Below, piece by piece: positions 10,822 to 47,312 of a stretch of DNA of 64,000 nt. The notes beneath the pieces were generated by a model. It was given only the letters and a program-made list of their open reading frames with translations. It was not told where the DNA came from and did not search any database. Location of the stretch: the sequence record MZ475898.1; one strand, 5' to 3'. The first letter of the stretch is position 1. Every line of letters begins with the position of its first letter. Position numbers and translations under genes: made by a program.

Positions 10822-10867
10822 AGTTGCGAGCGCATTGCTCAATACAATCATGCTGAGGAGCATAACA

Positions 10868-11209
10868 ATGAACGCATCTACTTTCGATTTTTCTATCATC
10901 TGCACCGAGAGCTTCAACATTAACGAGCTGAACAAAATCGCCGTTGAGCTGAATAAGCTGATCACTAACTCGCAGATCAAAATTGAAGCCGCAGAAATCG
11001 ACGATGAAGGCGCCGAGTGTATTCTTCTGGCTGTCGGTCTTGATGAAGACGGCGAAGAGACTGGCGAGAACGGCTACTCCCTGCATCTGGACAACGGCGA
11101 CTATCAGATCGTGTATCTCGGCGTGCCGCATCCTGACTTCGATAAGCACGAACTTGCGACCAGCGACTTTGAGTTGTTCATCAAATCAGTGAACGGCCTT
11201 GAGTTCTAA
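10868..11209 (+). CDS. hypothetical acidic protein
   Basis: ATG 10868 after hairpin SD; the longer track start overlaps promoter P1. Confidence 0.8.
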   Translation: MNASTFDFSIICTESFNINELNKIAVELNKLITNSQIKIEAAEIDDEGAECILLAVGLDEDGEETGENGYSLHLDNGDYQIVYLGVPHPDFDKHELATSDFELFIKSVNGLEF

Positions 11210-11262
11210 GCATTGATCTGGCAGAAATCGCCGTTGTGTTTAGACGCTCAACGGCATACTAT
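11210..11262 (+). promoter_or_regulatory. Box promoter P2
   Basis: GCATTGATCTGGCAGAAAT; TTGTGT-17-TACTAT (11257). Confidence 0.6.
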
Positions 11263-11311
11263 TATGTCTCTAGCGCAATGACGCGCTACAACAACGAAAG
11301 AGAGAAACAAC

Positions 11312-11566
11312 ATGAGCGAAGACGTTAAAGTAACAATCGACTTAGTAGCTGACTTTGTATCACGCACCGAAGTTGTGTTTGAAGACGGTCAATCATCTAA
11401 TGACTGGCTCGCGCCGTATGATCTGCGCCTGAACGTAACTGAGCCTCAAGGGCCGAACGGCTACCCCGAAGTTGAAATCGTCGGCCAGCGCGATAACGTC
11501 TTGCGCTTCTTTGATGAGCAGATGCCTGACAGCGACATTACAGAAGACTCGCTTGAATCTGCATAA
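11312..11566 (+). CDS. hypothetical protein
   Basis: 84-aa acidic ORF downstream of P2. Confidence 0.8.
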   Translation: MSEDVKVTIDLVADFVSRTEVVFEDGQSSNDWLAPYDLRLNVTEPQGPNGYPEVEIVGQRDNVLRFFDEQMPDSDITEDSLESA

Positions 11567-11581
11567 GCAACAAACAACACT

Positions 11582-11605
11582 GTGGCGTTACGGCGCCACT
11601 TTTCT
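11582..11605 (+). terminator. Rho-independent terminator
   Basis: GTGGCG-TTACGG-CGCCAC followed by TTTTCT. Confidence 0.65.
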
Positions 11606-11625
11606 ATTTCTGATCTGAGGTCAAT

Positions 11626-12165
11626 ATGAAACAAAAATTCTTATTCTTGCGCATGAGCCGACACGAGCTGAATCAGCATTTGTTTTTACTTCGTGGCATG
11701 AGCCGTGAGCGTCTTGAATCATTCACTGGTATTATCGCCGTTGTCAAAGACGATACGACGATGGCGAACATCGATGATACTGACCTGTATTATTTCAGCG
11801 AAGTAACAGCCGAAGAGACAACATCAGAGACGCAACAAACCTGGTGGAACCTGATTCATTACTACGACAATCAGATTGCTATCGGCTCACTCCCACGTAT
11901 AGAGCCGCTGCTGCCTGACGATTTAGTTGAGCGCATCAAAACAACTCGCAGCAATCGCTTCTACTACGAGTTCGATACGCAAATGCCAGAAGTGTTGGCC
12001 ACTGTTGATCTTGACCTACACTTCTTACCGTCTGCCGCTCAGCCTCGTGTGAAGAAGCCTAAAGAAGAACAGCCAGAAGTTAATCCCCTGGCCGCATACA
12101 CAGTCGAACAACTGTGTGCCGAACTGCGTACTCGCCTGAGTGCAAAAATCACTATCGAATTTTAA
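11626..12165 (+). CDS. hypothetical protein
   Basis: 179-aa ORF, GAGG RBS. Confidence 0.8.
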   Translation: MKQKFLFLRMSRHELNQHLFLLRGMSRERLESFTGIIAVVKDDTTMANIDDTDLYYFSEVTAEETTSETQQTWWNLIHYYDNQIAIGSLPRIEPLLPDDLVERIKTTRSNRFYYEFDTQMPEVLATVDLDLHFLPSAAQPRVKKPKEEQPEVNPLAAYTVEQLCAELRTRLSAKITIEF

Positions 12166-12182
12166 TCAACTAGCACAGGGAC

Positions 12183-12812
12183 GTGCCTCTAACTGAGATC
12201 AAAACTATGTTCACCAAAGCATTCTTCTTCAAAACTAACTACTCTGTATTGGCCGAAGGTGAGTTCGCGCTGCCTGTTGACTCACTGACCTCTCTCGTCA
12301 ACTCGCGCATTTTCATCTGCATCACAGAAGACAACCTGCGCTTTGCACTGACCAACATCACTGTGCAGCCGATTCGCAATGGCTTCTTGCGCGTTGGCTT
12401 CGAGCCGAAGACTGACGTGAATGCAATCACTACTCCAATCATCACGCCTAAAACGATGTGGAGCGAATATGATTTTGATGCGTGCAGTGTTGAAAACATC
12501 CCGTCATTCAATATCAGTACGCATGAAGACAAGAACAACGAACAACTGATTGCACTGTCATATGACCTTCGTATGGCTCTCATGCATTATCGTGAAGGCA
12601 TGTACTGCGTGACCGACATCGTTTTGCGTCTGCATGAGTATGGCATCTTTGTCGTAGACATTGATCAGAATCTCAAGGCTGCTCTCTCGCCTATCGCCGT
12701 GCTTAGCGAACGACCTACACATGCGATTAGTCTGAGCAAAGACAACGGTGTGCTGTCTCGCATTGATGACTTCGAACTGCCTGATCTCGCCAAACTGATC
12801 GTCCTACTGTAA
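12183..12812 (+). CDS. hypothetical protein
   Basis: 209-aa ORF; start uncertain. Confidence 0.75.
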   Translation: MPLTEIKTMFTKAFFFKTNYSVLAEGEFALPVDSLTSLVNSRIFICITEDNLRFALTNITVQPIRNGFLRVGFEPKTDVNAITTPIITPKTMWSEYDFDACSVENIPSFNISTHEDKNNEQLIALSYDLRMALMHYREGMYCVTDIVLRLHEYGIFVVDIDQNLKAALSPIAVLSERPTHAISLSKDNGVLSRIDDFELPDLAKLIVLL

Positions 12813-12864
12813 ACAAACAACTCTAGCCTCGCATCGTGCGGGGCTTTCTGCTTTGGAGAACACC

Positions 12865-13125
12865 ATGTATCAATATGACCGCGATGAATTGAATGATCTG
12901 CCGCTTGACGTGCTGCATAGCGAAGCTGAAAAGCGTGGCTTGCTCGCTGACCTGGACGACGATGATGATTGTCCTGACCGTGCAGTGCTGGTGGGCATGA
13001 TCCTTGATGATCAGAACGAGCGCAATGCCGAAAACGAAGAGGAAGAGCAGCGCCGTCAGATGCAAGATGACGCTGACGATCACCGTCGCATGTTAGACGA
13101 ACGCGACGGCTCAGACGACTGCTAA
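12865..13125 (+). CDS. small acidic protein with a helix-extended-helix-like module
   Basis: GGAG RBS; LNDLPLDVLHSEAEKRGL...DRAVLVGMIL. Confidence 0.75.
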   Translation: MYQYDRDELNDLPLDVLHSEAEKRGLLADLDDDDDCPDRAVLVGMILDDQNERNAENEEEEQRRQMQDDADDHRRMLDERDGSDDC

Positions 13126-13126
13126 C

Positions 13127-13465
13127 ATGCTATACTCTGGGCAGCAATACGATACACTCAGTCCTGACCAGTTGAATGAGTGTTTCAATCTGATTGAAAG
13201 TTGCATGGTGGCCTCTGGCTGTCGTGGCTTTCAAATAGTGTTATCACCATCTGGTCATGGCGATTGTCGTAGCGTCGTCCACATTCAGCATCCACAGTAT
13301 GCAGGTCACATTGAGTTCCCCTCAGTTGACCGTGATACTTTTCGTGTAACACTCGTCGCAACACGCGGTTGCTATGACAGCCGCACAGTGTTCGTACCAA
13401 ATTCAGATACAGCCTATTCAGTGATAGGTCTGTATCTCTCAAACTTTATAGGGGCTACAAAATGA
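13127..13465 (+). CDS. hypothetical protein
   Basis: 112-aa ORF in operon. Confidence 0.65.
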   Translation: MLYSGQQYDTLSPDQLNECFNLIESCMVASGCRGFQIVLSPSGHGDCRSVVHIQHPQYAGHIEFPSVDRDTFRVTLVATRGCYDSRTVFVPNSDTAYSVIGLYLSNFIGATK

Positions 13466-13806
13466 AACGCCGTGTTATTCTTATTGAGCAGTCAGAGTTC
13501 ACGGGTGACCCTCTGGTGTTCCCCACCGCTTTCAATTTCACAGGCATTGACGTTGTGGTGCTTGTGACAGTGACGCATCAAGACTTTGGTGGTGTGAAGT
13601 TTCACGACACCTATCGTGTGAACGAGATGCGTGTAAGTGAACACACAGATCCCCTGCGTCAGGAGATTGAGATTGTAGAGTACAGCAAACTGCCGAACAA
13701 GGAAGAAGACTTCCAGGCGCTGCTTGCTGTCGATTACTTCGACGAAGAGATCGCAGAACGTGACCTGCGTCTGTACGATACACCAACCACAATCGTCACT
13801 GCGTAA
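13462..13806 (+). CDS. hypothetical protein
   Basis: 114-aa ORF, ATGA overlap with the previous stop. Confidence 0.75.
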   Translation: MKRRVILIEQSEFTGDPLVFPTAFNFTGIDVVVLVTVTHQDFGGVKFHDTYRVNEMRVSEHTDPLRQEIEIVEYSKLPNKEEDFQALLAVDYFDEEIAERDLRLYDTPTTIVTA

Positions 13807-13813
13807 TAACCTT

Positions 13814-15467: not shown

Positions 15468-15509
15468 GCTGAAATAGCTATCGCGCATAATACGCTCCTG
15501 TGCTATACT
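15457..15509 (+). promoter_or_regulatory. Box promoter P3
   Basis: GCACTAATTAGGCTGAAAT, 28 nt, then TATACT (15504) preceded by TGC. Confidence 0.7.
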
Positions 15510-15554
15510 CATAGACGAAGCAACACATAATCTATTCACGCTAAGGAGCGTACT

Positions 15555-15986: not shown

Positions 15987-16051
15987 TTGCTTGCGGGTCT
16001 TTTACGAAGGGCCCGTCGTCAACAACACAAACCTGTTCTAAGGAGAACAAC

Positions 16052-16369
16052 ATGTCATCATTAGTTAAACTGCAATTCATCTTTCCAGAACTGACCTCAG
16101 TTACTGTAACTGTTTCTGATTCTGACATTCCTCGCTATCTCAATATTGCAGCGGGCGCCGAAGTAACATACGAAGGCCAGACGGCGCTGGAGCGTATTAC
16201 TGACGTAAACCTGCTGCGCAATCTTCTCGTGATTGATCGTAAAATCCTAGAGATGTTGCTTGAGCGTCACAACAGCGCAAACGTTTCTAGTGAAATCGCT
16301 CACGCTGTAGACCAGATTAAGTTTGTACCTAATCGTGGCCTAAAGTTAATCGTCAATCGTTACCGCTGA
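16052..16369 (+). CDS. hypothetical protein, paralog A
   Basis: FIFPE..VTV..P.Y..I.A..E....G.TA shared with the next gene. Confidence 0.8.
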   Translation: MSSLVKLQFIFPELTSVTVTVSDSDIPRYLNIAAGAEVTYEGQTALERITDVNLLRNLLVIDRKILEMLLERHNSANVSSEIAHAVDQIKFVPNRGLKLIVNRYR

Positions 16370-16407
16370 GATTTGTGAAGGGCATTTGCGAGTGCTCTTT
16401 GAAAATC
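16362..16407 (+). repeat. Intergenic direct repeat copy 1 (with hairpin)
   Basis: ACCGCTGAGATTTGTGAAGGGCATTTGCGAGTGCTCTTTGAAAATC; near-identical copy at 16743-16790. Confidence 0.9.
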
Positions 16408-16432
16408 CTAAACCCGTTCTATGGAGAACAAC

Positions 16433-16750
16433 ATGTCATCATCTACTGAATTTCATTTCATCTTTCCAGAGTCAACCACTCTTATCGTTACTGTGGGTAA
16501 CGGCATCGTCCCTGAGTATATGGGCATCCCTGCTAATCAAGAAACCCACCTGACTGGTGAGACTGCATTCAACTTTATGCAGAACTCTAACATCGTGGGC
16601 GTTATGAATCGTTTTGATCAGTCGCTTCTCAATCTGCTTATTGATCGCCATGAGCAGAACGAAGAAGAGGAGAGTGCGTTGCGTCAAGCACACATGCAGA
16701 AGCACACAAAGAACTTCGGCGTGTATCTGCTGATCAAACATCACCGCTAA
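16433..16750 (+). CDS. hypothetical protein, paralog B
   Basis: ATG 16433 after GGAG; homologous to 16052..16369. Confidence 0.8.
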   Translation: MSSSTEFHFIFPESTTLIVTVGNGIVPEYMGIPANQETHLTGETAFNFMQNSNIVGVMNRFDQSLLNLLIDRHEQNEEEESALRQAHMQKHTKNFGVYLLIKHHR

Positions 16751-16790
16751 GATTTGTGAAGGGCATTCGTATGAGTGCTCTTTGAAAATC
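16743..16790 (+). repeat. Intergenic direct repeat copy 2
   Basis: ACCGCTAAGATTTGTGAAGGGCATTCGTATGAGTGCTCTTTGAAAATC. Confidence 0.9.
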
Positions 16791-16813
16791 AACCCTGTTC
16801 TGAGGAGAACAAT

Positions 16814-17224
16814 ATGAAACATCCACAACCTGGCTCTGTATACACCCTGCGTGAAATGCTGACTGAACTGAGTCTGCGCGACACGCCGAATCTTGGCTTC
16901 ACTCCTGTTTCTGTGCGCTATCCCGAAACGAAGGAAATCGTCCAGCAGACGGTTCAGGATTCGCATCTGACCGAAGAAGAGATGCTCGCTCTTCCTGGCT
17001 GGGCAGAAACGAAGTGGCGCTACATTCGTGAAACCCACGAGTGGATCCCTGTGTTCGTCGCTGTTGACGATGCAGAGGTTGAAGCGCTGTGTGTCATTGA
17101 ACCCAACACTGACCGCTACTTCCGTAATGAGGGTATCATGCACGTTTACCCACGTGGCGTTGAGCGCGAGCAGCATAAAGCGTATGACCCAGAAACGCAC
17201 GGCACACTGGTTAAAGTGGCCTAA
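16814..17224 (+). CDS. hypothetical protein
   Basis: ATG 16814 after hairpin SD. Confidence 0.8.
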   Translation: MKHPQPGSVYTLREMLTELSLRDTPNLGFTPVSVRYPETKEIVQQTVQDSHLTEEEMLALPGWAETKWRYIRETHEWIPVFVAVDDAEVEALCVIEPNTDRYFRNEGIMHVYPRGVEREQHKAYDPETHGTLVKVA

Positions 17225-19997: not shown

Positions 19998-20204
19998 ATG
20001 AAAGACATTGTGCTACACACAGCCCTTTTATTGACCATGATCGTTGTTAGCTTTTTGACTCTCCACTACATTCGCTTCCTGAGTCTGGGCTACTATATGC
20101 TGATCACTATGACAGCATTCGTACTGGCAGTCTATGCGTGCAAGCGTCTCGCAACTGCTGTCACTAAAAATCGTTTTAACAAAGTGAGAATCAATCGTGG
20201 CTAA
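19998..20204 (+). CDS. small membrane protein
   Basis: 68 aa, two hydrophobic stretches. Confidence 0.6.
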   Translation: MKDIVLHTALLLTMIVVSFLTLHYIRFLSLGYYMLITMTAFVLAVYACKRLATAVTKNRFNKVRINRG

Positions 20205-20742
20205 ATCTTTCGGTGTGTACCTGACGTTCATTCTGCGCCATCGACCGCAAGACATTGGCCTTGCAATGGACACTCAGGGCTGGGTATCAGTTCCTGACTT
20301 GCTCGAACGTGCTCAATACAAGAAGCAACCAATCACGTTAGAGATGTTGCGCGAAGAAGTTGCTACTGACGGTAAAGGCCGCTTCCAGTTCAACGCTGCC
20401 CACTCGCGCATTCGTTGTGTGCAGGGACATTCAGTTGAGCATGTGATTCTTAACCTCAAGCCGTACACGAATCACAATGACCCGCTGTATCACGGAACGG
20501 CCAGCAAGAACGTTGCGTCTATTCTTGCGCAGGGAATTCTTCGCGGTAAACGTAAACACGTCCACATCGCAACCAACACCGCTACTGCTAAGCAAGTTGG
20601 TCAGCGTCACGGTGAACCTGTTGTATTTGAGATCGACACGTATGCCATGATTACTCACGGCTACAAGTTCGAACAAGCCGAGAACGGTGTGATTCTTATC
20701 GAGCACGTCCCATCCCGATATCTAAGGTTGGTAGAGTTATGA
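20197..20742 (+). CDS. kptA: RNA 2'-phosphotransferase, Tpt1/KptA family
   Basis: ILRHRP..GL.MD.QGWV, KGRF, IRCVQGHS, LYHGT, RKHVH, VFEID, NGVIL..HVP. Confidence 0.92.
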   Translation: MAKSFGVYLTFILRHRPQDIGLAMDTQGWVSVPDLLERAQYKKQPITLEMLREEVATDGKGRFQFNAAHSRIRCVQGHSVEHVILNLKPYTNHNDPLYHGTASKNVASILAQGILRGKRKHVHIATNTATAKQVGQRHGEPVVFEIDTYAMITHGYKFEQAENGVILIEHVPSRYLRLVEL

Positions 20743-21203: not shown

Positions 21204-21305
21204 ATGAATACCAACTACTGCCCGTTTCGCGCTGTGATGTACCACGCTTCAATCATCCTTCTCGCCATTTGCTCTGGCGTTGTTTTAGCCCATGCACATT
21301 TCTGA
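21204..21305 (+). CDS. 33-aa hydrophobic peptide (not in ORF track)
   Basis: GAGGA RBS; MNTNYCPFRAVMYHASIILLAICSGVVLAHAHF; first ORF after P4. Confidence 0.5.
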   Translation: MNTNYCPFRAVMYHASIILLAICSGVVLAHAHF

Positions 21306-21316
21306 GGAGAAAGATT

Positions 21317-21553
21317 ATGTCAGATCCAAAACCAAAACCAGAAGTAACAAAAGCTGATCTCCAACATCTGCTGCACGTAGCAGGTGCGTATGAAGGCAAC
21401 GACCGCCATCGCTGGTACGCAATGTTCGTCGTGCTCAAACTGAAACGTCAGATGGACGGTCAGAACCTGCCGCGCTCTTGTGCCAACATTACGCATGAGA
21501 GCCAAGACTACGAGATCGAAGAGGCTTGCTACAAGCTGGGGTATTTATCATGA
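21317..21553 (+). CDS. hypothetical protein
   Basis: ATG 21317 after hairpin SD. Confidence 0.75.
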   Translation: MSDPKPKPEVTKADLQHLLHVAGAYEGNDRHRWYAMFVVLKLKRQMDGQNLPRSCANITHESQDYEIEEACYKLGYLS

Positions 21554-25784: not shown

Positions 25785-26765
25785 ATGCGTTTTGGTTTCG
25801 CCTGCAAACTGCTTGATGACAACGGTAAGCAACCGTACACGAACAAGAGCCTGAGCTATGCTCACTTCTCCAAGCTGTCTCAGACAGAGCAGCAAGAAAA
25901 GCTGGTGCTCGTCGTCACACACAATCTGACCTCGTTGCTTGAGATGATCAGACACGTTGGCCGTCTGCGCACCGACTTGCGTATGTTTCGAATCACAAGC
26001 GAACTACTTCCGCTGTTCACGCACCCGATGGTAACGCGTATGTATCTCCAAACACACATGACCAAACTGACCGACACGATGTTGGCGACATGTGGTGCAG
26101 CGGCTAGACGTCTTGGTGTTCGACTGTCATTCCACCCAGGTCAGTTTACCGTGCTTGCGTCTGACCGACCTGACGTTATGCTCAACTCGATTAACGAAAT
26201 GGAGTATCACGCCTACTGTGCGCAGGCTATGGGCTACGGTCGTAAGTTCCAAGATTTCAAAATCAACATTCACCTGAGCGGTCGTCGTGGTTCCGCAGGT
26301 TTCAGAGACGCCTACTCTCGTCTAAGCGATCATTGCCGCAAGATGATCACGGTAGAAAACGATGAGTACACTTCCTCGATCGAGGATTGTCTTGAGCTTG
26401 CCGACATTTGTCCTATCGTTCTCGACATTCACCATCACTGGGTAATGACTAACGAATACATTCAGCCAACCGATGATCGTGTTCAACGTGTCATTGACTC
26501 GTGGCGCGGCGTTCGTCCTGTTGCGCATTACTCTGTGTCTCGCCCAGAGTTCATACCATCTACAGGTCTGCCTGATCAGAACAAGATAGAAGCAAAGTCT
26601 GCCTCGCTGCGTGCTCATTCTGACTACTACCACAACGACAGCGTAAACGAGTGGGCCCTCAGCTTCGAGCAATTCGACCTGATGTGCGAGTCTAAAGCGA
26701 AGAATCTAGCACGCACGAAACTAGCCCTTTTTAAGGGCAACTCTGCACAAATATGGTCAAAATAA
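25785..26765 (+). CDS. uvsE: UV-damage endonuclease (UvsE/UvdE)
   Basis: RFGFACK, MFRITSELLP, RLSFHPGQFTVLAS, INIH, TVENDE, VLDIHHHW, HYS, AHSDY, MCESKAKNLA. Confidence 0.93.
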   Translation: MRFGFACKLLDDNGKQPYTNKSLSYAHFSKLSQTEQQEKLVLVVTHNLTSLLEMIRHVGRLRTDLRMFRITSELLPLFTHPMVTRMYLQTHMTKLTDTMLATCGAAARRLGVRLSFHPGQFTVLASDRPDVMLNSINEMEYHAYCAQAMGYGRKFQDFKINIHLSGRRGSAGFRDAYSRLSDHCRKMITVENDEYTSSIEDCLELADICPIVLDIHHHWVMTNEYIQPTDDRVQRVIDSWRGVRPVAHYSVSRPEFIPSTGLPDQNKIEAKSASLRAHSDYYHNDSVNEWALSFEQFDLMCESKAKNLARTKLALFKGNSAQIWSK

Positions 26766-28680: not shown

Positions 28681-28958
28681 TGCAGCACCGTCGTAAAGTA
28701 AAGGCCGAGTCAAAGCAACGTTCAATACCCGAAGACTGGCCTGTATTCAAAGACATGTTGCTGACGTTGCGCATCGCTGTACTCACGGACGAGAAGCCTC
28801 ACGCTAAACTGCGTGCGCTTGCTCTCCAATGGTATACAGATGGGAAGTATCGTAACCCTGTCTGTGATTCTGTTCTGCTTAGGCTAACCGCTGAGAAACG
28901 CCCTAAGCAAACTCTTGATCAATTGATCACTCTCTATAACTTTCTTGAGGAAGAATAA
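28680..28958 (+). CDS. hypothetical protein
   Basis: TAATG overlap. Confidence 0.65.
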   Translation: MQHRRKVKAESKQRSIPEDWPVFKDMLLTLRIAVLTDEKPHAKLRALALQWYTDGKYRNPVCDSVLLRLTAEKRPKQTLDQLITLYNFLEEE

Positions 28959-30169: not shown

Positions 30170-30214
30170 CTGGACAAAACAGCGCTTCTTAACGAGGCGC
30201 TTTTCTGCTATAAT
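30162..30214 (+). promoter_or_regulatory. Box promoter P6
   Basis: ACACTTAACTGGACAAAAC, 28 nt, then TATAAT (30209) preceded by TGC. Confidence 0.75.
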
Positions 30215-33079: not shown

Positions 33080-33760
33080 ATGACTATTCTTATTTCTAAC
33101 CGCACCGACGAGGTGATTCGCCAACTCAACGTAGCTATCTGGTCAAGCGTTCTATTCGGACTCATTGTACTCGCATCAATTCTGGTGCAGCCGAATGCAA
33201 CAGCCAGCGTCTCTACGGGCCCTGATAACGTTATCGATATGTCTTCAACAACTTCACTCGATCCCTCCAATCGTGTGGCAAGAGAATACAAGGAGATTGC
33301 AAAGACGCTAGTTGTGCAAGACGAGCGAAGGCCCTCGCGTTCTGTTACGAGAGAGCGCCTCCGACAATTGTACTCGCATCTACCGCACCCCAATGATTTA
33401 GGCAGGCAGATTGATTTGGCCGCTGCAAAGTATGCAGTGGACGCAAAGCTGATTCTTTCCATTTGCGTCTCCGAGTCGCATCTTCGTGCTAAAGTCAGAA
33501 ACAAGTCTGGTGCAACAGGCATCTGCCAAGTAATGGCCAAGATGCATGGGCATTCAGCAAAAGACCTCCTCGATTATCGTATCAACATTGATGCGGCAAC
33601 GAAGATAATTGCAGATCTTAATAAACAGTGTCGTGGTCGTACTGCTTGTGTTATTCAAGCGTACAACACAGGCTGGGGAGCATATTCGAAGGGTGCCCGT
33701 GCACCGCAATACTTGGCTAAAGTTAGATCAGAGATGCGCAAGCACCCATCATCATCCTAA
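33080..33760 (+). CDS. lytic transglycosylase (SLT domain) with N-terminal membrane anchor
   Basis: AAAKYAVD..LI.SI..SES (catalytic Glu), GATGICQVM, NIDAA, AYNTG; hydrophobic VAIWSSVLFGLIVLASILV. Confidence 0.85.
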   Translation: MTILISNRTDEVIRQLNVAIWSSVLFGLIVLASILVQPNATASVSTGPDNVIDMSSTTSLDPSNRVAREYKEIAKTLVVQDERRPSRSVTRERLRQLYSHLPHPNDLGRQIDLAAAKYAVDAKLILSICVSESHLRAKVRNKSGATGICQVMAKMHGHSAKDLLDYRINIDAATKIIADLNKQCRGRTACVIQAYNTGWGAYSKGARAPQYLAKVRSEMRKHPSSS

Positions 33761-34491: not shown

Positions 34492-35637
34492 ATGACTAAT
34501 TCATCTCTGCCTTTCGTTTCTTGGTTCGAACGTGACAACTACTTCGATGACATGATTGAGCGTCTCGACCTCAAACGTCTCTGGGGATATGTTGAAAAGA
34601 ACAACGTGGTCAACAAGACTAAATACAATCTGCCTAACCTCACTGCCTACCACACTACCGAGCACATGAAAGAAGTTGCGTGCATCGCGTCCTCCCTACT
34701 GCACCGCGAGTCGAACCACGACTGGCAGATTCGTCTGATGGAATATCCGTTAGTCGTCGCGTGCCTCTTCCACGATATGAATCACAGTTTGGGTAAATAC
34801 ACGGATGACGTGAACATCAACCATGCGCTCGTTGCGTTTAATGATTATCTCAATAGCAAAGATGAGAATCAGGGCAACGACAAGCTGCTGTTTGAATATC
34901 ACGATCAGATCTGTGCGTTGATTCGTTGCACTCAATTCCCGTTCCATGAATCACGTAACCCAACTAACCTGATGGAACGCTGCATTCGTGATGCGGACAT
35001 TTTATACGGCCTGCAGGATGACGCAATGCCTGCTGTTGTGATTGGTCTACTGGATGAAGTGAACGTTCGTTTGGCTCCAGAAAGCAAATACTCCACAGCT
35101 CAGTGGGTAGCTGGTCGTATTGAGTTCCTGTTGTCGTGTGAGATGTTCACCGAAACTGCTAACAAAATCTTCTGCGATGCTCTTAGCACCAACAGCCCGA
35201 ACTATCACGGTAATGTGCTGCAATCTTTCCTTGAGATGAAAGTGCGGCTGATCGATGTTCGTGCAGGTAAGCTACGTGGTGGTGATGTTATCTGGACAGA
35301 CACAGAGAACGACTCAACCTATCGTCCACGCCAAATCAGAAACATCGGCAACGAAGCGCTGCCAGACGTTAACGTGTATTTCACTGACGGTCAGGCTTGC
35401 GGCTATCGTAGCGGGGAGACCGTTCAGTTGCTGCCTAACACTGAGATGGTGAAGCTCGAAGACATTGTAGTTGGCGACATTATTCTTGAGCCTGCACAGG
35501 GTGAAGTGAAGCGCGATCTGCATCGCATCGTAAACATCGCTAACGGTGGCCTGCATGAAAGCGTGCTCTATCTCGAAAATGGCGGTGTGTTTACGTCAGC
35601 GCCCAAAGGCCGTGTCTGTCGTGTAGTCAGCAAATAA
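34492..35637 (+). CDS. HD-domain phosphohydrolase with two C-terminal SH3-like repeats
   Basis: YHTTEH, CLFHDMNH, RDADIL; repeats VRAGKLRGGDVIW.. and VKLEDIVVGDIIL.. Confidence 0.8.
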   Translation: MTNSSLPFVSWFERDNYFDDMIERLDLKRLWGYVEKNNVVNKTKYNLPNLTAYHTTEHMKEVACIASSLLHRESNHDWQIRLMEYPLVVACLFHDMNHSLGKYTDDVNINHALVAFNDYLNSKDENQGNDKLLFEYHDQICALIRCTQFPFHESRNPTNLMERCIRDADILYGLQDDAMPAVVIGLLDEVNVRLAPESKYSTAQWVAGRIEFLLSCEMFTETANKIFCDALSTNSPNYHGNVLQSFLEMKVRLIDVRAGKLRGGDVIWTDTENDSTYRPRQIRNIGNEALPDVNVYFTDGQACGYRSGETVQLLPNTEMVKLEDIVVGDIILEPAQGEVKRDLHRIVNIANGGLHESVLYLENGGVFTSAPKGRVCRVVSK

Positions 35638-35682
35638 CTGGACGAAATAAGGCTACTCTGCTTAGGCTGCTTATGCTATAAT
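35630..35682 (+). promoter_or_regulatory. Box promoter P7
   Basis: GCAAATAACTGGACGAAAT, 28 nt, then TATAAT (35677) preceded by TGC. Confidence 0.75.
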
Positions 35683-35724
35683 ATGCGTGAGCAGTCATTT
35701 ATCATATTCTCAAGGGAGAAACGT

Positions 35725-39672: not shown

Positions 39673-39719
39673 ATCTGGACAAAATAGAGGTAGCTAGAAA
39701 AAGCTGCCCCTGATATACT
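39667..39719 (+). promoter_or_regulatory. Box promoter P8
   Basis: GCATAAATCTGGACAAAAT, 28 nt, then TATACT (39714) preceded by TGA. Confidence 0.8.
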
Positions 39720-39773
39720 TAAAAGCGTAGCTTGTGCTGCGCTTTTTTACTTTCTGTCTGAGGAGACAACGAA

Positions 39774-40229
39774 ATGAAACCAATCAAAGCAACTGAGGCT
39801 GACAAAGCGCTTCAAAACGAATGTATGGATGCTGTTGCTCAGTGTATTATCCTGAACACGCCTGACTGGCGAGATGTAGCGATTGCAGGTTTGCGCCTGT
39901 ATCTGGTTGCATCGAGTATGAGCGGTGCGGAACTTCCATGTATGCAGTTCGAACACAACGGCAAGCCTTGTCGTTTGTCGTTTAAGATGAACGTTGTCGA
40001 TGAAGGCGAAGACTTCACTCCAAACGAAGTCAACCAAGCGCACCAACAAGAAATGGTCGAATGCATTCTTGCTAAGACCGAAGCTCTTGGCGGTTACAGT
40101 TACTTTGATTTGTTCATTTGTGCAGGACGCCTGTTTATGATTGGCTTCGACGGTATGGCCGACACCGTTCCTGCTCTGATGTTCCGCTCAGACAAAAAGA
40201 ACTACCGTGTTAACTTGATCAACGGATAA
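39774..40229 (+). CDS. hypothetical protein
   Basis: 151-aa ORF with hairpin SD. Confidence 0.8.
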   Translation: MKPIKATEADKALQNECMDAVAQCIILNTPDWRDVAIAGLRLYLVASSMSGAELPCMQFEHNGKPCRLSFKMNVVDEGEDFTPNEVNQAHQQEMVECILAKTEALGGYSYFDLFICAGRLFMIGFDGMADTVPALMFRSDKKNYRVNLING

Positions 40230-40860: not shown

Positions 40861-40907
40861 ATCTGGACAAAATCGTGGTTGTAGCAAAAACCGTCCTATG
40901 TTATAAT
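40855..40907 (+). promoter_or_regulatory. Box promoter P9
   Basis: GCATAAATCTGGACAAAAT; TTGTAG-17-TATAAT (40902) with TG extension. Confidence 0.8.
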
Positions 40908-41116: not shown

Positions 41117-41938
41117 ATGCCAGAAGCACGCAAACCTCGCCCAGCTGATCGTTTCGCTAAAGCCCGTGCAGAGAAAAACTCACCGGAGCGTCAAGATGCG
41201 GCAGCCCAGCGCACGTATAAAGACACTCCGCCTAAATCTGTTCAGGTGAAACTTGATGCTGTGGCAGCTTCTAAGAAGAAAGTTTCACGCGGCCCCAAGG
41301 CATCTCGTCCGCGTCAGTCGCCTGTTGTTGACGCAGCACCAAAGCCTCGCATTCGTGATGAGGAACGTGTGTACAATCTCGTACACATGATTCTCTCTGC
41401 GTGGAAAGCCGATGCAGAAAACGCGGCGGTAAGTGTGGGAATCATTAAAGTGTCTCGCCGTAAGATCGAGGGTGCGTTACGCGATCTCAAGAATACGCGC
41501 TTCACTAAAATCCCAGGCTTAATCAATGACGTGCTTGTCTACAATGAACTGGTAGCTGAGTTCGGACAGTGGGTGTACGTCGAGCACGACAGTCCTGATT
41601 GGATTTTTGTGCGCCTGCCTGAAAACAGCACGCCTGTGATTCGCGCTGACATTAGTTACGCCAAGACGGGTGAAACTTCCACGTCTGTTTCGACTTCTAG
41701 TGAAGTTCTGCTGAAAGATCTTAGCGAAGACGAAGAAGATGAGATCCCCGATAATGTCGAGTACGACGATGCGGACGAGACTGACGAAGACGAAGCTGAG
41801 CCGTATGACTACAGCGCTTGGTCGCTGAGTGACCTGCAGGCTTATGCAAAGCGTTATGACTTCCTGCAGCCCGACACTGAGGGGTTCGATGATCGCGAGA
41901 AGTTGATAGCAGCCATCGAGCTGGGGGAACAGCACTAA
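41117..41938 (+). CDS. hypothetical protein: basic N-terminus, acidic C-terminus with HeH-like module
   Basis: 273 aa; YSAWSLSDLQAYAKRYDF..DDREKLIAAI. Confidence 0.85.
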   Translation: MPEARKPRPADRFAKARAEKNSPERQDAAAQRTYKDTPPKSVQVKLDAVAASKKKVSRGPKASRPRQSPVVDAAPKPRIRDEERVYNLVHMILSAWKADAENAAVSVGIIKVSRRKIEGALRDLKNTRFTKIPGLINDVLVYNELVAEFGQWVYVEHDSPDWIFVRLPENSTPVIRADISYAKTGETSTSVSTSSEVLLKDLSEDEEDEIPDNVEYDDADETDEDEAEPYDYSAWSLSDLQAYAKRYDFLQPDTEGFDDREKLIAAIELGEQH

Positions 41939-42111: not shown

Positions 42112-42164
42112 GCATAAATCTGGACAAAATCATGGTTGTATCAGAATGCTGCCTGTCATACACT
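42112..42164 (+). promoter_or_regulatory. Box promoter P11
   Basis: GCATAAATCTGGACAAAAT; TTGTAT-17-TACACT (42159). Confidence 0.8.
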
Positions 42165-42225
42165 TTAATGAGTCGAGCAATAGTGCTCGCAACAAACTAA
42201 ATCCCAATACTGAGGAGTATTACAC

Positions 42226-43833
<1,608 letters not shown>

Positions 43834-43874: not shown

Positions 43875-43908
43875 ACACTGACAACAAAGTTGATTGAGGA
43901 ATCACATT

Positions 43909-45171
43909 ATGTCAAACGCAAATAAAACTCTGCTTAACGCTCGTGTACGTCTGTCCACTGGCACAACTACTTTCATCAACAAGATTAACGCGAACGGCTA
44001 CGGCATCGATGCTAAGGGCCCACAGATTTCTGTGAAGCGTCTTGTTATTGCAGGCAAAATGCTCAAAGAGCTGGCTGAGCCGCTGCCGCAAGGTGAATAC
44101 GTTGTGCTGAACGGCGTCACTGTGAAACTGAACAAGCGCCAGCAACGTGAGCTTGCAGAGAAAACGCTCGACACTAAAGCGCTGCTGCCTGATTTAAGCA
44201 AGCTGACCTACGTTGACCCGCAGACAGGCAAAGTCACTGATTCAAAAGTGAAGGCGCCTAAAGCTGGCGCGAAAGCAAGTCTGAAAGCAACGCGTGAGCA
44301 CAACAAAGAGCCGAAGCGTAGTCGCAAACAGCACAAAGCTGAAACGAACGATCTCAAAGACAGTCTGGACATTATCGACGAACGCAAATCACCGAAAGCG
44401 TCTCTGATTGAACGTCTGGATGCAGCAATCGCCGAAGCGAAAACGAAAGCACGCCGTAAGCTGTTAGCCGAAACGTTCGACATGGACTGGGCTGATATTA
44501 AAAAGCATGGCGGTGCAGGTATCGTTAAGCAGCATGGCCGCAAGAACGCCCAGAAGTTTATTGATCGTCAGACAGTGCAGGTCGATAGCACAACGTTCAT
44601 CAAACAAATGCCAGCGCCGCTCAAGCGTCTTATTCAGGACACTGAGTTGCGTCTCAATCAAAAGCAGATTGAGCAAGTGCTTGGTGCGCTGGGGCTTGAT
44701 ACGCAATTCTACGCAGTCGCCGTGCAAGAGCTGCTGGGCAAACTCAAACTGTCCATAGGCGGCCGCGTGATCGAAGGCGAAGTTGTTCGAAAGGAGAACA
44801 CGCCGAAGCCAAAAAGGTTCGTACACGCTGAGGCGCAATACGCAGATAAGAAAGAAGCGAAACGCCGCGTAAGCAAAATGAAATACGCGCTGCTGATTCC
44901 GCCTACGAAAGGTCTGCCTGCGTTACGCATTCATCAGGCAGAGGCAAAGCAGTCACTCGCCGTTATGCTGCACCTGAAGCCTGGGAACATCAAGCGTGGT
45001 CTGCTTGCGTATGACAACAAAGGCCGTGAGTATATGTATGTCGCTTGCGATATGACGGGCCCTGTGTTCATCGATAAAGATAGCAACGAGCTGGCGTTCA
45101 CGTATGCCAATCTGATCGATAACTTCAAACTCAAAGCGCAGCCTGTGTCTGAACTGGACGTGGCCGTATGA
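43909..45171 (+). CDS. lysine-rich multi-domain protein (basic paralog of 42226..43833)
   Basis: ATG 43909 after hairpin SD; N-terminal about 50 aa align without gaps to the previous gene. Confidence 0.88.
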   Translation: MSNANKTLLNARVRLSTGTTTFINKINANGYGIDAKGPQISVKRLVIAGKMLKELAEPLPQGEYVVLNGVTVKLNKRQQRELAEKTLDTKALLPDLSKLTYVDPQTGKVTDSKVKAPKAGAKASLKATREHNKEPKRSRKQHKAETNDLKDSLDIIDERKSPKASLIERLDAAIAEAKTKARRKLLAETFDMDWADIKKHGGAGIVKQHGRKNAQKFIDRQTVQVDSTTFIKQMPAPLKRLIQDTELRLNQKQIEQVLGALGLDTQFYAVAVQELLGKLKLSIGGRVIEGEVVRKENTPKPKRFVHAEAQYADKKEAKRRVSKMKYALLIPPTKGLPALRIHQAEAKQSLAVMLHLKPGNIKRGLLAYDNKGREYMYVACDMTGPVFIDKDSNELAFTYANLIDNFKLKAQPVSELDVAV

Positions 45172-45554
45172 GAACTGAAATCATCGTAGCGGGAGTTCTC
45201 TCTCAACTTTACACGCGGCTGATTACGGCCGCTATAATGAAAGCGCATGTGTATTACTCAGACCTTGCGCCGGTGGTGTTCGGTGTGCAGCTTACCAAAG
45301 TCGGTAAGTCGCAGTATCAAGCGCTGTGGGATTTAGTAGCGCTGACGATGCAGATGGACCACGCACACGGCCGACCGCCTGTTGCTGCTCTGTATGTGTC
45401 TCGCGCTAATGCATCAAAACGACCGCCGCAAGCATTCTTCGCTGAATACGAGCGGCTAACTGGTAAGCGACTCAATGACGACGACTGGGAAGAGTTAGTC
45501 GATGAAGTATGGGCAGCTTACTCTCCACCAGAAATCTGTCAGGAGCCGACATGA
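45168..45554 (+). CDS. hypothetical protein (possible winged-helix fold)
   Basis: VYYSDLA..GRPPVAALYVS..PPQAFF pattern. Confidence 0.7.
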   Translation: MRTEIIVAGVLSQLYTRLITAAIMKAHVYYSDLAPVVFGVQLTKVGKSQYQALWDLVALTMQMDHAHGRPPVAALYVSRANASKRPPQAFFAEYERLTGKRLNDDDWEELVDEVWAAYSPPEICQEPT

Positions 45555-46009
45555 AGAAGTTGAAAGCCGTAAAGGTTAAAATTAGCCGCGGTGGTTATAA
45601 GCCTTCTTCTAAGGAAGAGGCAAAGAAGCTGGTGGCAGAGTTTCTGCTCGGTACCATCGGCATTAGCCCAACGCAAGTCAGTCAACAACTGCTGTTGAAT
45701 ATCACGAACTACAACTATCTGACCTCTGTTGCGTATTCTGGACGTTCTACAGATTACAGCCAAGCGGCAGCGCACAAAACTGTAAAAGAACTAAATGAAT
45801 TTTGTCGAAAGCATAAAATTCAACTGGGCTTGCTAATTATGCCCCACACGTCGGCGTCTGAATATGATGGTGACGTAATTGTTGCAATCCCGTGGGAGCA
45901 TGTTAAGAACAATCCGCAAATCCAGTCTGCCGTTAATTCTCTGTTTGAATCGGTTGAAGCAGACGGCTACCCACAGTATGTGACTGATGCTAAAACAGTA
46001 GAGGGATAA
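45551..46009 (+). CDS. hypothetical protein
   Basis: ATG 45551 after AGGAG. Confidence 0.75.
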   Translation: MKKLKAVKVKISRGGYKPSSKEEAKKLVAEFLLGTIGISPTQVSQQLLLNITNYNYLTSVAYSGRSTDYSQAAAHKTVKELNEFCRKHKIQLGLLIMPHTSASEYDGDVIVAIPWEHVKNNPQIQSAVNSLFESVEADGYPQYVTDAKTVEG

Positions 46010-46010
46010 G

Positions 46011-47291
46011 ATGTTCTACGACTATGTATTCAACTTCGACGAGCGCCAGACGCTACTGTCGTTAGCGGAATCCAAGTATCTTCTTAAACGGGACATTCCC
46101 GAGTATCTTAAAAAGTCCAAACACGCAATTGAGATTCGTCACACTGTGACCAATCGTGGACGCGAGCGCCGCTCAGGAACAATAACAACTCCTATCGTGC
46201 CGCGTATTCACACCCGTGATGTTATGCGCTTGCTTGATGATATTCGTGACAACGCGACTTACAGCTCCTGCCAAAGTCTCGCTGAACTGTTTGAATTGGG
46301 CTTGGGCGTTCCGCGCCAGAAAGATATTGCTACTTACCTTCATGCTTATTCGCGTGAGCACGACAAGAAAGGTATCGGTATCAAGTATATCCGCAAGCTG
46401 GTGGTTGATTATCATCGTAAGCACCGTCGTAGTATGGCGGGCAGTCGCTGGTTAATGCCTGCTGCTTACACGGCCAATCTGCTGAACATGCAGAACTTCA
46501 TTCATCTGAAAGAAGACGGCTACAAGGGTAAAGTCAAAACGCCAGACGGCATCCCTGTAGTCTTGATTTACCAGAGCACTGAATACGCGACTGGCGAGTT
46601 TACTTTGTGTGACGCATTCATGATTAGTCCGATGGGATATCCAATGCCGTTCGCACAGATTGCGCTGCGTCCCGAGTTCAAGGCTGTGCCTAAAACGTTT
46701 TGCTCCCAAGCTCTGCGCGGCAAAGGCATGTACTCAATGGTTCTCGGTATGATTTACTGGGAGAAAGGTGATTCAGTCGAATTGACCCGCGAAGTCATGG
46801 AGATTGATGATAACCAGTATCTCACGTTGCTTGATGATGAACGTTACGCTGACCGTCGCTCTGATGAATATTCAGCGATGCTGGTCAAGCGTGAAGAGTT
46901 CCGTCGTAATCGTGACAAGTGGCAGTCAGTGATTGATAAGTACGGCCAAACAGTTCGAACTCTCAAGCCTGAGATTAGCGCTCGTCTTGATCGTGCTCGT
47001 CAGTTCTTCTACGACCGTGCCGAGTTCCTGAAAGAGTTCGAGTCTCAGGAGAAGCGTGAGAACACCCGCGCATCAAAACGTTTTGCTGTAGCGTCTGCGA
47101 TGTTTGCAGCGGTTGACTGTGGGACAATTGCTGATCGTCAGACCTACCTTGCAGTAAGCACAAAGATTGATAAAGTGCATGACATTCTCGGTAAGTGGGG
47201 ATTCAACACTGTAAAATCTGTTAATGCTAGTTTGAAGAAGTCTCTTTTAACCTATGACGAATCAGGCGTATCTCGCGTCTGGTCACTATAA
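46011..47291 (+). CDS. hypothetical protein with a Sel1-like repeat
   Basis: 426 aa; CQSLAELFELGLGVPRQKDIATYLH. Confidence 0.8.
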   Translation: MFYDYVFNFDERQTLLSLAESKYLLKRDIPEYLKKSKHAIEIRHTVTNRGRERRSGTITTPIVPRIHTRDVMRLLDDIRDNATYSSCQSLAELFELGLGVPRQKDIATYLHAYSREHDKKGIGIKYIRKLVVDYHRKHRRSMAGSRWLMPAAYTANLLNMQNFIHLKEDGYKGKVKTPDGIPVVLIYQSTEYATGEFTLCDAFMISPMGYPMPFAQIALRPEFKAVPKTFCSQALRGKGMYSMVLGMIYWEKGDSVELTREVMEIDDNQYLTLLDDERYADRRSDEYSAMLVKREEFRRNRDKWQSVIDKYGQTVRTLKPEISARLDRARQFFYDRAEFLKEFESQEKRENTRASKRFAVASAMFAAVDCGTIADRQTYLAVSTKIDKVHDILGKWGFNTVKSVNASLKKSLLTYDESGVSRVWSL

Positions 47292-47312
47292 CCCTTATCT
47301 GAGGAGATAAAC

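Follow-up and report, generated by a model that had tools for sequence, protein, structure and literature searches.

The window analyzed here is the last 64 kb of the genome of Erwinia jumbo phage pEa_SNUABM_25; the rest of the genome comprises 199 kb. All annotated starts in the window (n = 96) were scanned for 4-nt loops closed by a perfectly paired stem of 5 bp or more. Perfect 5–6 bp stems around a 4-nt NNGG loop precede 12 of the 96 genes. The loop lies on the Shine-Dalgarno (SD) sequence in all 12, at position -12 to -14 from the start codon, which is ATG in every case, and the 3' end of each hairpin falls 2–5 nt before it. An earlier note on this DNA had listed ten of these hairpins; all ten are where it placed them, each with this spacing from an annotated ATG, and two that it missed (28942 and 35707) bring the total to 12. 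The features, named by their first positions, are as follows.

10850..10863, + strand: ATGCT-GAGG-AGCAT, 4 nt before the ATG of gene 10868 (113 aa)
15538..15551, + strand: ACGCT-AAGG-AGCGT, before gene 15555 (143 aa)
16034..16049, + strand: TGTTCT-AAGG-AGAACA, before gene 16052 (105 aa), tandem paralogue 1
16416..16429, + strand: GTTCT-ATGG-AGAAC, before gene 16433 (105 aa), tandem paralogue 2
16796..16811, + strand: TGTTCT-GAGG-AGAACA, before gene 16814 (136 aa), tandem unit 3
21299..21312, + strand: TTTCT-GAGG-AGAAA, before gene 21317 (78 aa)
28942..28955, + strand: TTCTT-GAGG-AAGAA, before gene 28961 (402 aa)
35638..35682, + strand: promoter-like box CTGGAC..N..TGCTATAAT, with gene 35725 the first gene downstream
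35707..35720, + strand: TTCTC-AAGG-GAGAA, before gene 35725 (224 aa)
39675–39719: similar promoter-like box, with gene 39774 the first gene downstream
39721–39746: terminator-like stem, upstream of hairpin 39755
39755..39768, + strand: TGTCT-GAGG-AGACA, before gene 39774 (151 aa)
42120–42164: similar promoter-like box, with gene 42226 the first gene downstream
42206..42221, + strand: AATACT-GAGG-AGTATT, before gene 42226 (535 aa)
43891..43904, + strand: TGATT-GAGG-AATCA, before gene 43909 (420 aa) and downstream of a terminator-like stem
47295..47310, + strand: TTATCT-GAGG-AGATAA, before gene 47313 (1001 aa)

By our reading, five hairpin genes are the first after a promoter-like site: 10868 (after TGCTATAAT), 15555 (after TGCTATACT), 35725, 39774, and 42226. 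Should the 33-aa ORF at 21204 prove spurious, gene 21317 would join them as the sixth. The earlier note had recognized promoter-first genes among the set but counted only four. The promoter-like box has 7 matches on the + strand versus 1.2 in shuffles, and was not detected by a -35/-10 consensus scan. Hairpins 28942 and 47295 are intra-operon; the 5' arm of the former lies within the upstream CDS, and the intergenic gap at the latter is 21 nt.

The number of hairpins far exceeds expectation. Mononucleotide shuffles of the upstream 30 nt, a comparison that the earlier note had proposed genome-wide, yielded 1.5 +/- 1.2 hairpins, so the 12 observed stand above background. A second null, in which 5' and 3' arms were exchanged between genes and position-specific composition was preserved, gave an expectation of 0.36 (binomial p = 4e-15). 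Genes 16052, 16433, and 16814 stem from one duplication, as previously noted; with two of these three paralogues removed, 10 hairpins remain versus 0.28 expected by arm swap (p = 4e-13). Stem lengths at the starts in the window are bimodal, with 0–3 bp or 5–6 bp and none of 4 bp. An annotation-free scan found 83 perfect 5-bp/4-nt hairpins on the + strand. Of the 14 hairpins with NNGG loops on the + strand (versus 4 on the - strand), 12 lie directly upstream of a start codon (2–5 nt before ATG). The element is specific to the RNA strand and lies at a fixed distance from the AUG.

Amid diverging flanks, the hairpin is preserved in front of orthologues (assigned from protein homology) in Alexandra, AD1, Y3, Yoloswag, a Yersinia phage, SNUABM_5, and JA11. 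Among 511 SD-like sites in eight phages, 46 hairpins were observed versus 1.78 expected. The most conserved member is hairpin 42206, kept in every relative examined and in 20 of 20 IMG/VR relatives of the 535-aa gene. Its stem passes by double substitutions from TAATACT to TAATTCT to TATTTCT, the last with TAGG or TTGG, a drift of the loop that occurs in the JA11-like clade, where the 7-bp stem is retained. The outer pair of hairpin 39755 covaries, being T-A in SNU25, Alexandra, and AD1, A-T in Y3, and C-G in Yoloswag and SNUABM_5. The SNUABM_7 counterpart of gene 16433 encodes a protein that is 100% identical, yet its hairpin is TAAGCT-GAGG-AGCTTA. Orthologues of gene 16814 have the stems TAAGCT (AD1), ATGCT (Y3), ATGTTCT (Yen9-02), and TGCT plus two G-U pairs (SNUABM_5), and the hairpin is lost in Alexandra and JA11. 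Other sites keep their stem sequence: ACGCT-GAGG-AGCGT precedes the gene 15555 orthologues of Alexandra and Y3 (28% aa identity) with diverged flanks, hairpin 43891 is identical in Alexandra, AD1, and Y3 despite diverged flanks (absent in Yoloswag, Yen9-02, and SNUABM_5), and hairpin 47295, which has been lost from Yen9-02 and JA11, retains (T)TATCT/AGATA(A) in Alexandra, AD1, Y3, Yoloswag, and SNUABM_5. Hairpin 10850 is identical in SNUABM_7, and the gene 28961 orthologue in AD1 has only 4 bp (CCTT-GAGG-AAGG). Hairpin 21299, whose 5' arm overlaps the end of the doubtful ORF at 21204, is absent in SNUABM_7, Alexandra, and Y3 and is therefore the least secure member. Selection acts on the pairing, and the earlier description of stems that vary in sequence while remaining paired is borne out by these compensatory changes.

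The hairpins are also inverted repeats in DNA, and they might act at that level, as a cruciform or the operator of a protein, or reflect SD composition by chance. We give this reading almost no weight. Arm sequences differ between sites and therefore could not be read by one DNA-binding protein, and strand and distance to the ATG are fixed. The use of G-U pairs at two orthologous sites, as intermediates, fits RNA rather than DNA. Chance is opposed by arm-swap and shuffle nulls exceeded 25- to 30-fold and by identical SD cores elsewhere in the genome that lack a hairpin. Together, the arm-swap null, the fixity of strand and position, the hairpin-free SD cores, and the G-U pairs effectively refute it.

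In at least seven phage genera, compensating mutations preserve the pairing, and the SD hairpins are therefore a real, shared translation-control element, selected at the RNA level and apparently not previously described. Our literature search found no published description of such SD hairpins, and they have no match in Rfam. The core reading, an RNA-level element of the initiation region in which pairing is constant and sequence variable, has strong support from the excess over chance, the confinement to one genome region, the persistence in different genera, and the compensatory changes. This part of the earlier note's inference, a shared translation-region element, stands; the trans-acting mechanisms it named (RegB-like, CsrA/RsmA-type) found no confirmation.

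Hairpin energies average -3.8 kcal/mol (sd 1.2) and lie between -1.7 and -6.2 kcal/mol. AU content rises with stem length, the GC fraction being 0.37 at 5 bp, 0.27 at 6 bp, and 0.18 at 7 bp (the longest seen), and stability is confined to a narrow, weak range. In local-context folds, hairpin 10850 has -4.1 kcal/mol and a pairing probability of 0.84, and 3 of the 12 have probabilities below 0.2 or about 0.4; hairpin 21299 is weak (-1.8 kcal/mol, P 0.13), as is hairpin 28942. The hairpins accompany the strongest SDs (-8.3 kcal/mol with a hairpin versus -5.65 kcal/mol without, p = 2e-5), and the net energy of hairpin SDs, about -4.5 kcal/mol, is near that of an average SD.

In our best, though tentative, reading, the hairpin is a self-contained mask that would be opened by the ribosome's anti-SD from the exposed GAGG loop. 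It forms part of the ribosome-binding site, with a perfect 5–7 bp stem, inner pairs U-A and C-G, and the loop G-A-G-G. In free mRNA, the loop would display the GG of a very strong SD, (U)GAGGAG, and the AG and the next 3–5 nt would be paired with the upstream complementary arm. The 16S anti-SD would nucleate on the four exposed loop bases and then displace the 5' arm. The energies would allow such a toehold invasion, since the SD:anti-SD duplex, at about -8 to -9.5 kcal/mol, has roughly double the stability of the hairpin, at about -2 to -6 kcal/mol. The purpose would be protective or insulating: the mask would exclude whatever else acts on single-stranded GGA/GGAG, including repressors of the CsrA/RsmA type, endonucleases specific for single strands, and long-range pairings that compete for the site. 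The outcome would be an insulated, protected initiation site with the net strength of about an ordinary SD and slow on- and off-rates, which may benefit the phage over a plain weaker SD. Such a mask would serve a particular gene set, mostly leaders of transcription units. The literature searched held no expression, structure-probing, or decay data for these phages. The MS2 coat-gene initiator hairpin is likewise a weak RBS hairpin with a narrow stability window that the 30S subunit can still open, but it is a single RNA-phage site with the AUG in the loop, whereas here a dsDNA-phage family of at least 12 sites has the SD looped and the AUG outside. De Smit and van Duin reportedly found the MS2 hairpin tuned to a stability threshold and proposed a standby-binding model.

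The distribution of the element is regulon-like. Outside the window, about 1 hairpin occurs among 244 genes (199 kb) versus 12 among 96 inside, and [GA]AGGAG SDs are within hairpins in 8 of 9 cases in the window versus 0 of 28 elsewhere. The hairpin genes are confined to one arm, in one 36-kb stretch, which suggests a time- or factor-specific role and is not easily explained by a purely intrinsic device. The main rival to the mask, possible but somewhat unlikely, is a translational operator of a post-transcriptional regulon: an RNA-binding protein, which could be phage-encoded or host CsrA/RsmA, would clamp the GAGG loop on the U-A/C-G-closed stem, block the 30S subunit, and shut off or tune the gene set jointly. 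This distribution argues for it, as do a core, CUGAGGAG, that is nearly invariant between genera with free outer stems and the presence of GGA in 45 of 48 distinct hairpins. CsrA/RsmA sites share the short SD-overlapping hairpin, GGA core, variable stems, and many target mRNAs. Opening the closing U-A pair, at a cost of 2.4 kcal/mol, would yield a C-G-closed hexaloop, UGAGGA, equal in size and closing pair to the RsmE/CsrA consensus hexaloop. To our knowledge, CsrA/RsmA is present in all hosts (Erwinia, Dickeya, Yersinia). The canonical register is not found, however: in the 4-nt phage loop GG is all of GGA that is unpaired, its A belongs to the closing pair, and the hairpin is one nucleotide off the ANGGAN hexaloop. 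Canonical CsrA binds GGA inside a penta- or hexaloop, usually at two sites, whereas no second GGA lies within 65 nt upstream in 12 of 12 hairpins. The JA11-like clade varies the loop and keeps the stem, no CsrA homologue was detected among all phage ORFs, no candidate trans-factor was found, and the protein of the 151-aa hairpin gene lacks any known RNA-binding fold. Loop position 1 is G in 34 of 38 hairpins versus 8 of 51 non-hairpin NAGGAG SDs, and G rather than A there adds -1.0 kcal/mol of stability in the nearest-neighbour model. All conserved nucleotides, this G included, can be explained by SD function and hairpin stability, leaving no sequence conservation that demands a protein; a dedicated factor may thus exist but need not be invoked.

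GGAG occurs in about 40 of the 48 distinct hairpins, with the GG|AG bond at the loop-stem boundary, and could be cut there by a structure-specific endoribonuclease like T4 RegB for timed mRNA inactivation. We regard this as improbable. RegB/S1 sites are likewise GGAG SDs of a phage gene subset with the scissile bond at a structural junction, the SD of T4 regB is itself a target, and the sole SELEX substrate cut without S1 has a looped GGA with the next two nucleotides paired, one nucleotide from the hairpin geometry. Natural sites, however, are single strands of 11 nt (GG*AGRAYARAA), and secondary structure shields them from cleavage, whereas in pEa_SNUABM_25 the AG and the next 3–5 nt are paired. 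Six hairpins carry GGAA, which RegB cuts poorly, phmmer found no homologue among 2,912 ORFs (best E = 0.45, non-coding strand), and a 50-kb T4 region rich in early genes contains zero such hairpins.

Hairpin stability shifts by about 1.1 kcal/mol between 28 and 37 C, and the hosts are plant-associated with variable temperature, as would suit an RNA thermometer coupling early-gene translation to ambient temperature through hairpin melting. This option, raised in the earlier note, is very improbable, given that the stems have little stability at either temperature and always leave the GG core unpaired. In addition, the SD:aSD duplex outcompetes the hairpin at 28 and 37 C, the Watson-Crick stems are perfect and lack the mismatches typical of ROSE or fourU, and no Rfam match exists.

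The helices of T4 e, soc, 49, and I-TevI also hold a phage SD in secondary structure. They provide temporal control, being stable and fully sequestering the SD and/or AUG, and late transcripts start inside the helix and bypass it. The pEa_SNUABM_25 hairpins, by contrast, have marginal stems and an exposed GG, with the promoter-like sites 35–60 nt upstream.

The window is identical to positions 199018–263017 of the genome of Erwinia phage pEa_SNUABM_25 (MZ475898.1, 263 kb). This is a Snuvirus-type jumbo phage with Alexandra, AD1, Y3, and Yoloswag as relatives, and a published comparison placed this group with Pseudomonas phage PaBG (PMC7412058). A sigma-70-type factor gene was predicted in PaBG, with relatives only within this group and Mieseafarmvirus (PMC7412058). 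The deposited record has 96 CDS within the window, on the plus strand throughout and every one named hypothetical. RefSeq names of the orthologues in phage SNUABM_7 were available for the following genes, all hypothetical in MZ475898.1:

8845–10683, plus strand, EPS depolymerase
20197–20742, plus strand, RNA 2'-phosphotransferase (Tpt1/KptA-like)
25785–26765, plus strand, UvsE-like endonuclease
33080–33760, plus strand, transglycosylase
34492–35637, plus strand, phosphohydrolase

A 336-nt gap without annotation in MZ475898.1 contains a 112-aa ATG ORF (13127–13465) that is annotated in SNUABM_7 (gp262) and is probably a gene missed by annotation.

The 30 nt upstream of each annotated start were scanned for perfect stems of at least 5 bp around a 4-nt loop. 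Twelve genes in the window have such a stem (starts at 10868, 15555, 16052, 16433, 16814, 21317, 28961, 35725, 39774, 42226, 43909, and 47313), and in 12/12 the loop lies on the Shine-Dalgarno (SD) sequence, 12–14 nt before the ATG. All ten hairpins reported in the earlier note are present, and two further sites were found at 28942 (TTCTT-GAGG-AAGAA) and 35707 (TTCTC-AAGG-GAGAA). Shuffles of the upstream sequences predicted 1.5 genes, so the excess over shuffled background on which the earlier claim depended is confirmed. A stricter null, in which genes were anchored on the GG and arms were swapped between genes with position-specific composition kept, predicted 0.36 genes (P = 4e-15); with two of the three tandem paralogues left out, 10 were observed and 0.28 predicted. 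Stem lengths were bimodal (0–3 bp, then 5–6 bp, with zero genes at 4 bp), a pattern that points towards a separate class and not one end of a continuous spread. An annotation-free scan of the window identified 83 perfect hairpins with a 5-bp stem and a 4-nt loop on the plus strand. Loops of the form NNGG numbered 14 on the plus strand versus 4 on the minus strand, and 12 of the 14 end 2–5 nt before an annotated ATG. Across eight phages, 46 of 511 SD-like sites are enclosed by a perfect stem of 5 bp or more, versus 1.78 expected by arm swapping.

For controls, the remainder of the phage genome and a 50-kb T4 sequence were used. Outside the window, the annotation-free scan of the rest of the genome returned one clear SD hairpin, at gene 00181 (TCTTTT-AAGG-AAAAGA), and none occurred in the T4 sequence, which is rich in early genes. 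Genes with an [GA]AGGAG SD have it inside a hairpin in 8/9 cases in the window versus 0/28 elsewhere in the genome (Fisher's exact P about 2e-7, calculated by hand from the counts), so the hairpin is not a by-product of the SD core. CT precedes 7 of the 28 SDs of this type outside the window, yet no hairpins form there. The hairpin marks a particular gene set at record positions 209.8–246.3 kb. An orphan hairpin (TACTC-AAGG-GAGTA) lies outside the window on the minus strand, near record position 87107, with no ORF of at least 30 aa after it. It sits in 1.3 kb without annotated genes (minus strand, L004 36479–37796, record 86379–87696).

Syntenic stretches of 42–48 kb were taken from eight phages, in which the number of SD hairpins declines as evolutionary distance grows:

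SNUABM_7, 11 SD hairpins
Alexandra, 7 SD hairpins
AD1, 7–8 SD hairpins
Y3, 8 SD hairpins
Yoloswag, 4 SD hairpins
Yersinia phage fHe-Yen9-02, 3–4 SD hairpins
SNUABM_5, 5 SD hairpins
JA11, 1 SD hairpin

Orthologues were assigned from protein homology only and their upstream regions inspected afterwards; they keep the hairpin though the leader flanks have diverged beyond recognition. Upstream of the 535-aa gene (start 42226), the stem is AATACT/AGTATT in SNUABM_25, SNUABM_7, Alexandra, and Y3, TAATACT/AGTATTA in Yoloswag and SNUABM_5, TAATTCT/AGAATTA in the Yersinia phage, and TATTTCT-TAGG-AGAAATA in JA11, where protein identity is 34%–36%. An alignment-based search of IMG/VR for relatives of the 535-aa protein retrieved 20 loci, metagenomic contigs among them, and 20/20 have a perfect SD hairpin. 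In the JA11-like clade the 7-bp stem is kept and the loop drifts to TAGG and TTGG. The outer pair at the 151-aa gene (start 39774) is T-A, A-T (Y3), or C-G (Yoloswag, SNUABM_5), and 5' arms in the small tandem family include TGTTCT, TAAGCT, AAGCT, TAGCT, TTAGCT, ACGCT, ATGCT, and ATGTTCT. At two orthologous sites G-U pairs complete the stem, consistent with a helix formed in RNA; the overall enrichment of G-U-containing hairpins was not significant (6 vs 3.6). The covariation score was 0.62 versus 0.14 in shuffles and collapsed once partners were slid, a descriptive comparison only because the alignment used (A1) was picked for perfect stems. The hairpin is a strand- and position-specific RNA helix at the ribosome-binding site, and its pairing is under selection. 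A repeat acting at the DNA level, or chance, is left with negligible probability.

Individual hairpins have also been lost. The one at 21317 is missing in SNUABM_7 despite a 99% identical protein, that at 43909 in the three most distant Erwinia and Yersinia relatives, and that at 16814 in Alexandra and JA11. At 16433, about 8 hairpin positions differ between SNUABM_25 and SNUABM_7 while protein and flank are 100% identical, a change more likely to reflect gene conversion from the neighbouring paralogues than serial independent substitutions. Within 15987–16813, a near-identical 63-nt unit precedes 16433 and 16814, with the order stem-loop, TTTGAAAATC..AACCC, and SD hairpin; a similar 65-nt unit with stem-loop and SD hairpin precedes 16052. 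The hairpins aid start-codon annotation in this phage group. In the Alexandra homologue of the 1001-aa protein (start 47313 in the window), the annotated start (L008 41619) overlaps the upstream gene, and the conserved SD hairpin indicates the ATG at 41658.

The consensus element begins with an A/C-rich leader, frequently with CC at its end, and 3–5 free pairs, followed by C-U, G-A-G-G, A-G, the complementary arm, and AUG after 2–5 nt. Hairpin free energy at 37°C ranges from −1.7 to −6.2 kcal/mol (mean −3.8, SD 1.2); AU content rises with stem length, which reaches a maximum of 7 bp. In local context, a pair probability above 0.7 is predicted for 8/12 hairpins. All hairpin genes start with ATG and have the strongest SDs in the window, with 9 of the top 15 and SD:anti-SD energies of −8.3 versus −5.65 kcal/mol (P = 2e-5). 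This pairing exceeds hairpin stability, so opening by the ribosome should be feasible, and the net energy comes close to that of an average SD. The hairpin set is restricted to one gene set and tied to the strongest SDs, and its stability is weak and confined to a narrow range. The general reading of the earlier note, a shared translational control element, is supported, without a specific factor being singled out. Loop position 1 is G in 34/38 hairpins versus 8/51 non-hairpin NAGGAG SDs. This preference was rejected as evidence for a protein, since G at this position is worth 1.0 kcal/mol more stability than A in the nearest-neighbour model; SD function and hairpin stability then cover every conserved nucleotide.

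Three known types of element had been proposed for the hairpins, and each was compared with them. CsrA/RsmA sites have a GGA core, which the hairpins share (GG is followed by A in 45 of 48 distinct hairpins). In those sites an unpaired GGA sits in a stem-closed penta- or hexaloop, A(N)GGA(N), whereas the minimum-energy structure here is a tetraloop that leaves GG alone unpaired, the A being paired with U. Adopting the hexaloop state would cost +2.4 kcal/mol and even then leave GGA one position off the canonical register. CsrA/RsmA targets usually have at least two GGA sites 10–63 nt apart; here GGA is absent from the 65 nt upstream of 12/12 hairpins, with one within 40 nt downstream. This upstream depletion is modest relative to other genes (P about 0.002–0.01). 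No CsrA homologue was found among all ORFs of the phage genome. Register, the missing second GGA, and the lack of a phage homologue speak against a canonical CsrA/RsmA site, though the host protein may bind. GGA is under-represented genome-wide, at 0.49 per 65 nt versus about 0.7 expected from composition.

T4 RegB cuts GG|AG in early-gene SDs, and its natural site is the 11-nt single-stranded RNA GGAGRAYARAA, which secondary structure protects from cleavage (PMC1702504, PMC3014915). Its target with S1, GGAG (or GGAU) in an intergenic translation initiation region, is shared by about 40/48 distinct hairpins as GGAG; six others have GGAA and a few GGG or GGC. RegB needs 11 single-stranded nt, whereas here the AG and the next 3–5 nt are base-paired. 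The single S1-independent RegB substrate has GGA in the loop and the next two nucleotides paired; with GG looped and A-G paired, the present hairpins are one nucleotide off and would fit only if the closing U-A frays. A phmmer search with T4 RegB against all 2,912 genomic ORFs with a length of 40 aa or more detected no homologue (best E = 0.45, on the non-coding strand), though a remote one may have escaped it. Cleavage of the hairpins by a RegB-like nuclease, as proposed earlier, is improbable.

RNA thermometers such as ROSE and fourU hold the SD core in an imperfect helix that melts at physiological temperatures, whereas the hairpins leave GG unpaired and have perfect Watson-Crick stems. They are weaker than the SD:anti-SD duplex at 28 and 37°C alike, and the 64-kb window has no Rfam match at gathering score. 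All of this speaks against the thermosensor suggested before, and we consider a thermometer highly improbable.

The reading we tentatively prefer is that the hairpin acts as a self-contained mask. The anti-SD would nucleate on the exposed GAGG and then displace the 5' arm, while agents needing single-stranded GGA or GGAG, such as CsrA-type repressors, single-strand endonucleases, and competing folds, would be kept out. Its main rival is possible, though we find it less probable: the hairpin could be the operator at which a repressor acts in trans, with a phage protein and host CsrA/RsmA as the candidates. This would better account for the regional restriction. A further proposal, which we regard as unlikely, is that the hairpins are operators of a phage-wide post-transcriptional regulon under a candidate phage repressor or nuclease that reads the GG|AG loop-stem junction. 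If true, the factor would be functionally analogous to T4 RegA or RegB, with specificity for structure, and PaBG/Alexandra-type jumbo phages of Enterobacterales would share a conserved, new family of translational regulators.

No prior description of these hairpins was found in the searchable literature. Regulatory hairpins with the ribosome-binding site inside have been known as isolated examples or as sites targeted by global regulators, and as far as we found no jumbo phage has been described with a family of a dozen in its genome. Perfectly paired, only marginally stable, and with the SD in the loop, the hairpins are confined to a single gene class, and compensatory changes accompany their conservation at protein identities as low as 34%. 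They offer a clean natural system in which to relate weak local structure at a strong SD to initiation kinetics and mRNA protection, and one suited to the study of escape from host regulators such as CsrA. The element is cleanly testable and provides a handle on a possible new phage post-transcriptional regulator.

Five of the 12 hairpin genes (10868, 15555, 35725, 39774, and 42226) are each the first gene behind a promoter-like site that has an extended −10 element, TGnTATAAT/TGnTATACT, or CATACACT at 42226. In three strict cases, a CTGGAC box starts about 39 nt before the −10 hexamer. An annotated 33-aa ORF (21204–21305) ends in the 5' arm of the 21299 hairpin and itself comes directly after a TATAAT-like sequence. 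It may be spurious; if it is not real, 21317 is promoter-proximal and a sixth first gene. Intergenic stem-loops precede four hairpin genes (16052, 16433, 16814, and 43909), and two (28961 and 47313) are intra-operon, with the 5' arm within the upstream coding sequence. The full promoter-like motif consists of the box CTGGAC(A/G)AAA, a spacer of about 33 nt, and the extended −10 (TGnTATAAT/TATACT), without a −35 element. In its strict form it occurs 7 times on the plus strand, versus 1.2 in shuffles and once on the minus strand, and roughly half of the first genes behind it bear an SD hairpin. Copies were located as follows:

30170–30214, plus strand, box motif
35638–35682, plus strand, box motif
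39675–39719, plus strand, box motif
40863–40907, plus strand, box motif
42120–42164, plus strand, box motif
54870–54915, plus strand, box motif
near 10760–10820, looser copy
near 15470–15520, looser copy

The T4 gene e/soc helix is stable, covers the SD and/or AUG, and is bypassed by a transcript starting inside it; here the stem is weak, the AUG lies 2–5 nt outside, and the promoter-like boxes end 42–71 nt upstream of the ATG. A consensus −35/−10 scan missed the box promoters. Canonical −35/−10 sites are depleted at 10–29 kb (8 vs 21.8 expected) and not at 29–48 kb (17 vs 19.9). Terminator-like sites occur at about twice the shuffle frequency across 10–48 kb (39 vs 17.8 and 33 vs 18.7). Downstream of the box promoter and ahead of the SD hairpin of 39774 lies one terminator-like stem (39721–39746; 11 pairs, then a T-run), a possible leader attenuator or 5' stabiliser.

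PHROGs and Pfam searches with the hairpin genes returned only families of unknown function or sub-threshold matches from acidic tracts. The 151-aa protein (39774–40229) has only two near-identical matches in a homologue search. Its AlphaFold model (pLDDT 85, pTM 0.83) matches nothing in the PDB at E 0.001 or better, RegB/RelE-like structures included; given a confident model, this argues against a nuclease of the RegB/RelE type and against any RNA-binding fold that could be recognised, and the predicted structure may represent a new fold. Profile searches with two alignments (A2 and A3) against PDB sequences gave no significant match, and Pfam, PDB, and the named PHROGs contain no match to the 535-aa protein (42226–43833). 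The latter combines a conserved N-terminal domain with a basic, Lys/Ala/Pro-rich stretch and long tracts of Glu/Asp, and is possibly a very abundant early protein. Its gene has the most conserved hairpin and is preceded by a 287-nt intergenic region.
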